Origin: Dimorphilus gyrociliatus
Lineage: Eukaryota > Animalia > Annelida
Reading direction: 5' to 3'
Length of the DNA: 64,000 nt
Assembly: GCA_904063045.1 (NCBI GenBank)
Contig: CAJFCJ010000005.1
Location: 2,660,165 to 2,724,164 of the forward strand
Part shown: in pieces, positions 17,401 to 22,219 of the stretch
How positions within the stretch are numbered: the stretch's first letter is position 1
Layout: each line of letters opens with the position of its first letter
Notes under the pieces: model-generated
Told to the model about the DNA's origin: nothing
Database searches by the model: none
What the model saw: only the letters and a program-made list of their open reading frames with translations
Translations under genes and position numbers: made by a program

Positions 17401-19287
17401 CATATTGACTCCTTTGGTGCTAGGGCACTGAGCGAACTACTTTTTTTTTTAGAAGAAAACTTGAATGAATAATTTTAACTGTAATATTAAAAAAAAATTA
17501 AACTATGATATAATATGTCGAAGATCTACATTGGGAATGGGAAAGTTTGATCGAACAAGTTTTTTATGTACTTTCTTTTCGTCGAACTTGTGTGTAAAGT
17601 CAAGCGTAATAATATACAAATATTGTTCTTACTAACTACCACTATGAAATAGACTTTGTAGTAAATGGTATATCTAAGTTTGATTAATAGTTCTCCCACG
17701 TGAGTTTCTCCTCAATAATTTCCATCAGAACTTGTTAATATCGCAAAAATTCCTTAAACAGATATTTTGATTAAAATTATCTAGGTCAGCTTTCTTGAAT
17801 GTTCTAGTCATTACGAAGACCTTGAACTATATATGCTATCATGTCAATGTAAGACAAAAAAAATATTAAATGTATAAAATATTCCAAATTAGTTACGGGG
17901 TGCTTCAGAGGTCTTTGAAGGTTAGGTTAATGTCTACCTTCCAGCTTTTCCTTAAAGTATATTTCGCTGAAGAATTCAAGTATAAACTAAGAAAAGTCAA
18001 ATCGCCTAAGGCATTATGCACTCTAAAGGTAATCTCGTTCTCGCTAATTCCGTGTGAGAAAGTAGATGAAGGTTCTAAATTTGTAATCCCCTATTTAATT
18101 ACAAATTCGTCAACAAAAATGATGATGAAAAATTTTATAAAACGCAATTCTTAACGCTCCATCACAAAGCTATTACCTCAAATTTCTTATCCAATCATTG
18201 GCTTTCAAAACGAACTTGAAGTGTTAGATATTAAAAGATAAAACCTGATAAAACAATGTTAAAAGGTATGAAAAAATAAAAAAATCCTATGAATTTCTTA
18301 ATACTTCAACATGTGCTTCCTTGCCAGCGGTACATTTAGAACACTTTGAAACATGATTTCTTTATTGATTATGTCCAAAGTTTGATGATATTACTCCTTA
18401 TCTGACGCTTGCTGTTCCCAGATTATTGGCTTGTAGCCAGCTAATAAATTTTCAATAAAACACTGTCATATAACTATTATTTTATTTATTACAAAGGCTC
18501 TTTTATCGCTTGCCCAATTTAATTACCATAGTCTTCTTTTATATCACAGGTCTTTCAGTACAGAATTACATTTTACGTAAGAAAAATATTCTTAGCCAAT
18601 GTTACTGATTTATTTTTTATTCTATTTTGCTGGTAATTTAAGTATTGTTTTCAAAGAGAAAAGTCAACTATTTTTTTTTCTTTATATAAACTTATCCCAG
18701 ATATGAGACAATTTTCTTCTGTACGTGTGCTGATGTGTGGTAAATGGCACGGATGATGTTGAAAATAGTCCATATACAAAAGAAACTCTGATTTTCCACA
18801 GTTAGAAATTTTTTATATTTATGTTATTTTAATAATTTAATTTAATTCTATTGAAAGCATTCTTCGTCGACGCATAAATTTTTATAGACAACACATCTCG
18901 TCTCTATAAGTATAATTCCAGCAAGTTAAAAAAATACACATTCACATCTCGAACGGTACGAAAATTGGCAAACATTTCTCATAGCGTTCAAACCAACAAA
19001 TTATCCTATAATTGAACATTCAGAAATTACATATATTCCGAAATGCGATAAAATCCTGTTTCATGGAACTTTGTCCATGTTATTTTATATTGCATATACA
19101 TTAATAATAAATACAAGACATCATTCATATATCAACGGATGTATACGCAATATAAATTTGAGGAAGGAACTTGGGTTCCTTAGATTCTACCGAGTTTTGT
19201 GTAAATTTCCGAGCAAAAATAATTTCGCATATATGTATATATATATAAACATTAGGGATATATACACATAGATATATAAACGTGTAT

Positions 19288-19295
<8 letters not shown>

Positions 19296-19327
<32 letters not shown>
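19296..19327. repeat. (TA)n microsatellite, probably in the PTP4A 3' UTR
   Basis: About 16 TA units visible. Confidence 0.9.
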
Positions 19328-19334
<7 letters not shown>

Positions 19335-19574
19335 GGAAAGTATATATAAATATATGTTTACTGCAAGGAGCACCATTATAAACGATCCATATTATTACAA
19401 TGATCTTCAATCTACACAATAATTTGCATGCGCTACATTGAAAGCTGCGTGATACACAAAACGATTTCAAGAAACGATGCACAATATAGTGAGAAGCTGC
19501 GGAATCAGCGGCGAATCTTATGTTTAAAAAACCCTGACTTTTTTCCTTCCTCTGAAACCGCTTAGCTGTTTTTT

Positions 19575-20331
19575 TTACATTATGCAGCACTGCTTTCCGT
19601 TGGCTTTAAGCCGGCCTTTTGGACGATACTTCTTTAAAAACTCCAGCTGATTAGCGTTGATTGCCCCACGTCTTTGCCTATAAGATCAGTCACCTTTATT
19701 TTATTTTCAAACATGTCATAAATTGTACTTACGCTCGGATCATCTCTACAGCGGATTCATATTTCATTCCGCATTCAATCAAAGCAACAGCTACAAGAAC
19801 TGGAGCACGTCCTAATCCTGCGACGCAGTGAACAGCCACACAGGATCCTGGATCATTTTTGAATCGATTTTTTAATAAATCAAACCACTGATCCACTATC
19901 TTTTCGGGTGGCGGATATCCGTCGTCGAATGGCCAGTCCTGAAGAAAAAAATCACATTCTTGTTGACAGCATTCTATCATGCTTACACTCTTCGTACTAA
20001 GTAACCTTTAAGAAGCTACTTGACCTTCGACTTGTGGCCAAAAAGTTATTCCAATATATTTAAGATATATACTCACAATGACATTTATTCCTTGAGCTTG
20101 AATAGGCTCCTTAGAATAAGCTGACGGACAAACTCGAACTAAGTCGCGCACACCGACTCTCTTCAAGTCCTGAAATATGGAAAGAGATTAGCATCAAAGA
20201 TTCTCTCGATTGATCTTTATCGATTTTACCTGTATGTAGCTGTCTAACCCGTCCTCTTTGGGACAATTAGTTATGTAGAACTTCATGTTCTTATGAGTAA
20301 TTAAAGTCGGTTCAGGAAGTCTGGCCACCAT
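19575..20331 (-). CDS. PTP4A: PRL/PTP4A prenylated protein tyrosine phosphatase, 4 coding exons
   Basis: [70 protein letters not shown]-terminal CaaX CCIM* (TAA 19575-19577). Confidence 0.95.
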
Positions 20332-20486
20332 ACTTTCGCGTTTTTTCTTCAAAAAATGCAATTTACCAGCAAAAAAATTATTGTGCAGACAAAAATTTCG
20401 TTGGCAGCAGTGAATAAGGCAATCGACGATTTCTTTTTTTTCTGAATAAGAGCGTTTATTTTAATCCATCTAAAAAGTATGACTCC

Positions 20487-20702
20487 TTAGTTGAGATGCT
20501 GTGCCTGGCAGTAGTCACCGCTGTTGCACACAAATTCCATGAAGGTGTGCCCGAGTTCTCCTCTAAACTGCGTGAAAGAGAAGAACAGTCGTTAATTACA
20601 ATTTCCACTTCTTACGCAACTTTGTAAAGAGTCTTTGTTACGAATGACGGATTGTTCACCTACTGTTACGCGCCGACTTCGTACTCTCCCACTGCTTGAC
20701 AT
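20487..20702 (-). CDS. Peptide-coding uORF in the PTP4A 5' leader (spliced; C-terminal ...FRGELGHTFMEFVCNSGDYCQAQHLN*)
   Basis: ATG 20702, exon 20702-20616, 48-nt GTAAG...CAG intron 20615-20568, exon 20567-20487, giving a 55-aa open frame. An internal ATG at 20540 is in frame. The stop is 155 nt upstream of the PRL ATG. Vertebrate PTP4A1/2 leaders are known to carry a conserved Mg2+-responsive uORF. Confidence 0.75.
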
Positions 20703-21253
20703 AGCTTATCAAGCACACTAAAAAGTCACAACCGATAGCGTTGTTAAAATTAACAGAGATAATTAAACGGCCGCGTCAGGTATGCCGATACATATTGACT
20801 ACGTACTACCATCTGCCGGCAAAAAAAAACTTCATAAACCTAAGCAGATCGAGGTAATGCGTTACCATAGCATACACACCTGTTACTCTTTCTTTTCCAA
20901 GACTAGGAAAATAATTGCACTCATTGACCGTTTAAGAGATACGACAGAAATGTTTTAAAATCTTTTATTACTCAATATTGTACAATACAATGTGATTATG
21001 AATTTTTTTATAATGATTCATTACCACTAATTATCCACGTGATAAAATTCTTGGTCTATATCGAAAACAACTGTCTAAAAATATTCGAAACGGAAAAACA
21101 TATCGATAAAAAAAACGAAACGTTGCTTAGAAGTGAATACTGAGCTTATAAAACTGGTTTAAACTAGGTACGTGGTCATGGTAAACAAAACAACCTGAGA
21201 TATCTTGAGATTCTATCGAAAATTTACAGCTAAAATTCAATTATTCTACTTAC

Positions 21254-21400
21254 CAATATGTTCGCGCTCATTTATTGTCGAAATTCGAAGGGAAAAAGCT
21301 CTGAAGCTAGCGACTTCGATAAAAATATCGTCGCAGTGCGACAAGCGTTCTGGAAAGACCGAGAAATGGCGACCGGCCTTACAACGTCATTGGGAGATTT
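21254..21400 (-). promoter_or_regulatory. Putative distal first exon/promoter of PTP4A
   Basis: GC-rich segment with CCAATGACGT (CCAAT + CRE half-site, 21384-21393). It ends ATG AGC GCG AAC ATA TTG|GTAAGT (donor at 21253). Confidence 0.55.
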
Positions 21401-22219
21401 CCTTTTAGTTACTAGTGACATCTAGTTAAGAAACATTTTGATGTCTCAAATTCGTTACAACAAACAAGATAATATAAATATGTTTTTGTTATATTTTTTC
21501 TATCATCTTCTATACTTGCTCATGAGGCAAAGGTTCAACGAACGCTACGCCAAGATTATATTGTTCTAAATTACATGTTTTACAGAGTCTAACCAGTGAG
21601 CAGGTTTTCCAAAAAACACACACACATGATAATACAACGATAGGGAAGAATATTAAAATCGCTATATGTAACCACTGCTCGTCTTTGTTTACTAGATAGG
21701 AAAAAAAATAATGTTAATAAAAGCGTTACAAATCATTTCACTGGTGTATTAACCAACCGGAAACTTGATTAGAGACGTATAATGCAAATTTGATCTCTTG
21801 TTGGTTAGTCAATGATCGTTTGGTCTGAAATTAGACGAAGCATAACGTTTTTAATTCAAAAAATATGTAAAAAAAAAAAGGATTTTGAAAAATTCCATAT
21901 GGTTCGCAGCTGAAATAAACAATATTCTTTAAAACAAGAAGAAAAAGACGAAAGAAACATAAAACAAAAACGAGTGATTTATTTAACTTACGCGAAGTTT
22001 AATGTTTTTACGATCGATAAAAAAAGTCACGACTACATCGATAAATTGCAAAAGAAGCACAAACAGCCTGATTAATCTTATGTTTTTCATCGTTTTAAAT
22101 TTAAATTTGTGAGCGAAAAAGGGATACCGTATTAATATTATTTGGAATTACATTCGAATAATAGAGGATTTCTGTACAATATAAGATAATGTTCAGAAAT
22201 TAAAACTAATTTGTTAAAT

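Follow-up and report, generated by a model that had tools for sequence, protein, structure and literature searches.

PRL phosphatases and CNNM form a Mg2+-homeostasis module that is also relevant to cancer, and an upstream open reading frame (uORF) in the PRL leader is its proposed Mg2+-responsive step in vertebrates. In this closest described system, the "magnesium-sensitive upstream ORF" of PTP4A1/2, translation of vertebrate PRL-1/2 goes up on Mg2+ depletion via the leader uORF (Hardy 2019, as summarized in passages of PMC11855589 and PMC10083557); the same passages state that scrambling the uORF coding sequence, with the start and stop kept, abolishes the Mg2+ response, and that AMPK/mTORC2 signalling is needed for the response. 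A frameshift in the conserved-peptide uORF of human PTP4A1 led to higher reporter expression in the ESUCA study (PMC7530721, Takahashi 2020), in which the PTP4A1 uORF was used as a positive control, and conservation of the PTP4A1/2 uORF from human to fish was reported with uPEPperoni (2014, PMC3914846). The element is described as "evolutionarily conserved" in passages of Hardy 2019 and later papers. In the literature searched, no statement of PTP4A uORF conservation in invertebrates and no occurrence of the string DYCQAQH were found, and Hayden and Bosco 2008 makes no mention of PRL; the taxonomic ranges of ESUCA, given in a figure and the supplement, lay outside this search, and bilaterian-wide conservation may already be catalogued there (e.g., in the ESUCA 2020 supplement). 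The family and its function are thus already published, and it is the annelid member that is new. The element described here, from the annelid Dimorphilus gyrociliatus, is like its vertebrate counterpart in occupying the same place in the PRL leader and ending ahead of the main AUG, and also in having a homologous core, a length of about 30–45 codons, and selection at the peptide level. It differs in the tail that follows QAQH, which consists of six residues of the form x-x-(F/Y/L)-A-x-K in the four vertebrate sequences and of two residues in Dimorphilus. It differs also in its host, an annelid, in that the published descriptions consulted concern vertebrates or name no invertebrates, and its function in Dimorphilus is presumed by homology.

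Eukaryotic arrest peptides encoded by uORFs, reviewed in PMC7530721, include the fungal arginine attenuator peptide, the AMD1 MAGDIS peptide, and the plant conserved-peptide uORFs. In these, as for the PRL uORF, a short conserved nascent leader peptide couples the level of a metabolite or ion to the downstream ORF; however, they are unrelated to the PRL uORF in sequence, and in the PRL uORF the distance from motif to stop varies. The Mg2+-responsive uORFs of TRPM7 (Nikonorova 2014, as cited in a passage of PMC11855589) likewise place a Mg2+-homeostasis gene under uORF control but, compared by that description, belong to a different family and work by ORF competition, unlike the PRL uORF. The bacterial mgtA/mgtL and PhoP/PhoQ-controlled 5' leaders (PMC10083557), which link Mg2+ status to the expression of Mg2+-homeostasis proteins, offer an analogy without homology, as they act by riboswitch and transcription attenuation.

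The stretch of DNA analyzed here, 64,000 nucleotides in length (the window), carries a PRL/PTP4A gene on its minus strand, the features of which are collected in the table below together with the homologues from named taxa. The encoded PRL is 100% identical to P0002 (DgyrCDS3712 of Dimorphilus gyrociliatus), for which precomputed Pfam matches to PF22785, PF00782, and PF00102 are available, and its translation contains the Cys-X5-Arg P-loop, the DWPFDDG loop, and the C-terminal CAAX box CCIM that are the hallmarks of the family. An AT-rich tract of short repeats (TATA/TACA-like units) lies at 19125-19376, about 200 nt past the PRL stop codon, and probably belongs to the 3' UTR or to the sequence immediately following it.

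Features of the Dimorphilus PRL leader and gene, and uORF peptides found in named taxa
Feature	Positions in window	Strand	Sequence or remark	Basis
Distal 5' exon of the dominant PRL transcript	21254..21344	minus		X1 record 1
Intron, GT..AG, 686 nt, phase 0	20568..21253	minus	splits the uORF just ahead of the first conserved codon	contig joints
First uORF exon as proposed earlier (ATG 20702, 29 codons)	20616..20702	minus	inside the 686-nt intron	unsupported as part of the conserved-peptide uORF
Conserved uORF core, 24 codons	20496..20567	minus	FRGELGHTFMEFVCNSGDYCQAQH	translation and homologues
Variable uORF tail and stop	20487..20495	minus	L, N, then TAA (20489-20487)	translation
Spacer from uORF stop to PRL start, 155 nt	20332..20486	minus		coordinates
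PRL/PTP4A coding region, 167 aa	19575..20331	minus		contig joints and translation
PRL coding exons	20229-20331, 20076-20168, 19732-19937, 19575-19676	minus		RNA contigs
Zebrafish ptp4a1, L031			MSKHIPQFCGVLGHTFMEFLKGSGDYCQAQHGVYAEK, stop; core FCGVLGHTFMEFLKGSGDYCQAQH, 19/24 identical to window	transcript
Zebrafish ptp4a2, L033			MVGPFFCFRVDSDHTYMAFVTVCREFCQAQHLTFADK, stop; core 12/24 identical to window	
Barn swallow (Hirundo) PTP4A2, L026			FCWRILGTFMAILSVRADFCQAQHSTLAAK, stop; ~0.6 kb before the start exon; core 10/24 identical	
Little skate, PTP4A3-like, L027			FNSSFQHTFMEFVRNSSGYCPAQHSIFADK, stop; PRL exact match to Leucoraja erinacea protein	Logan transcript
Amphioxus (Branchiostoma), L024			FFGCLGVTFMAFVKDSAEYCRAQHDA, stop; ~290 nt before the ATG	
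Acorn worm Glandiceps, L042			FSGCFGVTFMEFIKNSGDYCQSQHE, stop	
Scallop Pecten maximus, L037			FFGELGHTFMEFVTNSGDYCQAQHAL, stop; core 22/24 identical to window	
Termite Cryptotermes, L038, L039			FLGETILTYMEFQLDSGEYCQAQHK, stop	genome and transcript
Bee Nomia, L043			FPGECILTYMEFQLDSAEYCQAQHK, stop	
Limulus, L041			...LMELFLRVEGEYCQAQHK, stop; weaker match	

The structure of the leader was derived from transcript contigs of four RNA runs aligned to positions 19600-21600 of the window; the runs with a PRL transcript are coral, marine, and invertebrate metatranscriptomes, and this RNA evidence, consisting of assembled contigs, is silent on abundance and transcript ends. The main contig (run X1, record 1; 1085 nt) comprises 19600-19676, 19732-19938, 20078-20168, 20229-20567, and 21254-21344, so that a single contig covers the distal exon, the uORF exon, and the PRL coding sequence. 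Its splice joint between 20567 and 21254 is the main one, and a minor joint between 20567 and 20660 occurs in run X20. At its 3' end, the distal exon reads ...TAA ATG AGC GCG AAC ATA TTG before the donor GTAAGT; the uORF thus starts at the ATG at 21271-21269, directly preceded by an in-frame TAA, and the six codons MSANIL are joined to the conserved exon, giving an RNA-supported uORF of 32 codons. Read on the minus strand, 20567-20487 translates as FRGELGHTFMEFVCNSGDYCQAQHLN followed by the stop. The ATG at 21271 is the first AUG of the leader as assembled (at least 327 nt; the contig ends at 21344), and its weak context (caataaATGa) may cause it to be skipped by many ribosomes. It is followed by an in-frame internal AUG within the core (20540-20538, minus strand, invariant among the homologues), which would yield a form of 17 codons (MEFVCNS...), then by a mini-uORF of two codons (ATG GAT TAA, 20469-20461) inside the 155-nt spacer, and finally by the PRL AUG at 20331, which stands in a strong context (gaaagtATGg).

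These contigs bear directly on the earlier note, which had proposed, from the letters of the window alone, a spliced uORF of 55 codons ending 155 nt before the PTP4A ATG. Its 3' half holds: the TAA at 20489-20487 lies at exactly that distance from the PRL ATG, the conserved exon is real, and the acceptor cag/TTT at 20567 is a genuine splice site in the transcript contigs. The 55-codon form itself is not borne out, the RNA contigs giving 32 codons from the ATG at 21271. An ATG at 20702 followed by 29 codons up to a GTAAGA at 20615 is indeed present in the window (minus strand); however, the 48-nt intron (20568-20615) that would join it in frame to the conserved exon is rejected by both the RNA contigs and the comparison with the closest relative, a metagenome locus (L003) whose PRL is 98.8% identical to that of the window. 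The joint between 20615 and 20568 occurs in no contig of the four RNA runs, and the proposed intron is read through unspliced by X1 record 2 (20577-20933) and X20 record 9 (20540-20689). The uORF exon of L003 shows 100% nucleotide identity with the window, versus only about three-quarters (estimated from the alignment) upstream of the acceptor; since this upstream part carries 1-nt indels across the proposed exon and intron, with GTAAGA changed to GTAACA, the coding frame of the proposed first exon is not preserved even between such close relatives.

Some other RNAs retain or include parts of the 686-nt intron. A minor leader isoform in run X20 joins the distal exon to an extra exon at about 20660-21194 (~535 nt, with a loose end at 21195), which lies within this intron and of which 20660 then joins 20567; this isoform would bring further short uORFs into the leader. 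Across the joint between 20660 and 20567, the ATG at 20702 reads MSSSGRVRSRRVTVV up to a TAG stop, in a different frame from the conserved peptide. The L003 contig (1-130), in which the coding introns are spliced out, keeps intron sequence immediately ahead of the uORF exon, and X1 record 2 consists of intron sequence alone. In such intron-retaining RNAs, the conserved peptide could start only at the internal AUG (17 codons), and this may be one reason for the constancy of the methionine at core position 10. Apart from leader structure, Dimorphilus PRL transcripts with at least 99% identity occur in coral and marine metatranscriptomes (X1, X2, and X14-X18), and Dimorphilus is probably common in such samples without being noticed.

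Homologues of the uORF peptide were found both in metagenomes and in named taxa. In a word search, the 55-residue peptide matched only P0001, a metagenome ORF over the same exon, which has the acceptor in common with the window and reads FSGEFGHTFMEFVCNSGDYCQAQH...; the alignment of these two sequences was then used to scan metagenome contigs, yielding 20 loci. Thirteen of the 20 (L003-L015, from metagenomes or metatranscriptomes and without taxon labels) are true homologues, all reading F.GE.GHTFMEF(V/I/L)(C/T)NSG(D/E)YC(Q/L/R)AQH and, in all but one, continuing after QAQH with a short tail, variable among the loci, and then a stop. In the genomic loci among them, ...cag stands immediately ahead of the first F codon. 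PRL coding sequence lies downstream on 10 of the 13 contigs, as a full or nearly full coding sequence on six and as the first PRL exon, 1.2-1.4 kb downstream, on four genomic contigs. A further hit, L022 (9334-9378, RSGDYCQAQHL), was rejected as a chance match in a long bacterial ORF resembling DNA gyrase B with an inserted element. Loci L016-L021 all have the same tblastn values (79%, residues 1-24), and L020 originates from a human-gut assembly; we suspect vertebrate, probably human, contamination, and these six were left out of the comparisons, in which the vertebrate side is represented by zebrafish, skate, and swallow.

For named taxa, PRL proteins with source names were traced to their loci or transcripts, which were searched with the uORF peptides; the taxa compared are all bilaterians, namely an annelid, a mollusc, insects, Limulus, a hemichordate, a cephalochordate, and vertebrates. 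The window, zebrafish ptp4a1 and ptp4a2, and swallow PTP4A2 have in common the pattern F..TFM....(D/E)(Y/F)CQAQH. The acceptor just before the phenylalanine at core position 1 is shared by the annelid, scallop, acorn worm, termite, and amphioxus, and in the transcripts that reach it, the uORF start codon lies in an upstream exon, 1-14 codons ahead of the junction. The tails after QAQH comprise mostly 1-6 residues and are not conserved outside vertebrates. With more than 20 independent loci at which it is found upstream of PRL genes, the conserved exon is far above chance. The skate uORF precedes a gene that NCBI names PTP4A3-like, and in vertebrates the element may extend to paralogues other than PTP4A1 and PTP4A2. 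A search of the Apodemus PTP4A2 locus (L023), covering the gene range and a further 10 kb, revealed no uORF exon, probably because the 5' exon lies further upstream or the gene model is atypical. The leader of Drosophila PRL-1 (FBtr0332357) contains a conserved 42-codon sORF without YCQAQH (Mackowiak 2015, PMC4568590, supplement), a motif retained in both termite and bee; flies may have lost the element or replaced it.

Selection was assessed on the 24-codon core of 22 sequences by the proportions of synonymous (pS) and non-synonymous (pN) differences. Against the window, pS is about 0.7-1.3, that is, saturated, and pN is 0.03-0.32, and the means over all pairs are 0.74 and 0.18, respectively. 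Saturation of the synonymous sites together with so little non-synonymous change indicates selection on the peptide. Six positions (F1, T8, M10, C20, Q23, and H24) are invariant in 22/22 sequences, and F9/Y, F12, S16, Y19/F, and A22 are nearly so. In some pairs, the uORF core is even better kept than the phosphatase that it precedes: scallop and window agree in 92% of the core versus 62% of the PRL protein, and zebrafish ptp4a1 and window in 79% versus 57%. The peptide has no match among Pfam families or PDB chains. Purifying selection on the frame, for which the earlier note had proposed a check by dN/dS, is borne out, and the similarity to the vertebrate PTP4A1/2 uORF peptide to which it pointed holds with the zebrafish ptp4a1 core. 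The motif EF.C.SDYCQAQ given there was approximate, the homology being sound and the true shared motif being HTFMEF..(N/G)SG(D/E)YCQAQH. The claim that a nascent-peptide Mg2+ sensor is conserved across bilaterians stands in part: the peptide is present, and under selection, in deuterostomes, lophotrochozoans, and ecdysozoans, while Mg2+ sensing in invertebrates is extrapolated from vertebrates.

We therefore regard it as likely, by homology, that the Dimorphilus element is the annelid orthologue of the conserved-peptide uORF of vertebrate PTP4A1/PTP4A2 and works by the same switch mechanism. By homology with the vertebrate element, ribosomes on the uORF would be slowed or arrested via the nascent peptide, and this block would prevent scanning and re-initiation, resulting in low PRL synthesis; a drop in intracellular Mg2+ or in energy status would then relieve the block, so that PRL would be made and could bind the CNNM Mg2+ transport mediators. 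For the annelid, translation of the uORF, the repression, the stalling position, and the Mg2+ response are all what we infer from that homology. The occurrence of the same peptide before PRL genes in annelids, molluscs, insects, hemichordates, cephalochordates, and vertebrates suggests that the translational switch is probably ancestral to bilaterians and not an addition of the vertebrates.

A further-reaching proposal, which we put forward only tentatively, is that the PRL uORF encodes an ancient arrest peptide, of at least bilaterian age and with the six invariant positions, that would on its own render translation responsive to free Mg2+ or Mg-ATP within the ribosome, the elongation stall falling at or just after QAQH and not at the stop codon. 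The varying distance from QAQH to the stop is a poor fit to a stall positioned at a constant interval before the stop; on the hypothesis of a stall, the short variable tail outside vertebrates would tie it more likely to the core than to the stop distance.

It is also conceivable, though unlikely, that the peptide-dependent repression of PRL operates in invertebrates without any Mg2+ response, as a constitutive brake or in response to some other cue, for instance eIF2 phosphorylation, general energy status, or polyamines. Few mRNAs are resistant to eIF2 inhibition; that of human PTP4A1 is one of them, its leader conferring the resistance (PMC4383229), and the reported requirement for AMPK/mTORC2 signalling in the vertebrate Mg2+ effect (PMC11855589) means that the peptide itself need not be the sensor. 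Against this, PRL-CNNM binding is reported as evolutionarily conserved in a passage of PMC10040874, and a shared homeostatic loop, as assumed in the switch that we favour, is the simpler reading of so strongly conserved a peptide.

That all 24 residues of the core, and not the C-terminal ones alone, are constrained while the length of the tail before the stop varies would also be compatible with a free micropeptide acting in trans on PRL, CNNM, or another partner, any effect on PRL translation being secondary. We consider this improbable: in cis reporters in human cells, the effect on the downstream ORF depends on the uORF sequence (PMC7530721), the peptide, of about 30 residues, belongs to no Pfam family, has no solved structure, and carries no evident targeting signal, and its linkage to PRL leaders is strict at every locus with downstream sequence. 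Least probable is that the conservation is due to an RNA element (a structure, a protein-binding site, or a splicing enhancer) and not to the translated frame, as the complete nucleotide identity of the exon between the window and L003 might by itself suggest, since third codon positions are saturated between phyla with the amino acids kept and every pair has low pN against saturated pS, the 19 codons GHTF..QAQH differ between the window and locus L001 by 9 synonymous and 0 non-synonymous changes, and the frame is open at all loci with a stop shortly after QAQH, a codon substitution pattern by which RNA-level conservation is excluded as the main cause.

The annelid orthologue of the vertebrate uORF thus extends a known family, and since both the family and its function are known, its practical value is modest; the invariant residues provide a short list for mutation. 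If the PRL uORF does encode an ancient arrest peptide, it would be among the oldest and best-conserved regulatory nascent peptides of eukaryotes, and its sensing could be studied in any animal, among them Dimorphilus, a small annelid that can be cultured and has a compact genome.
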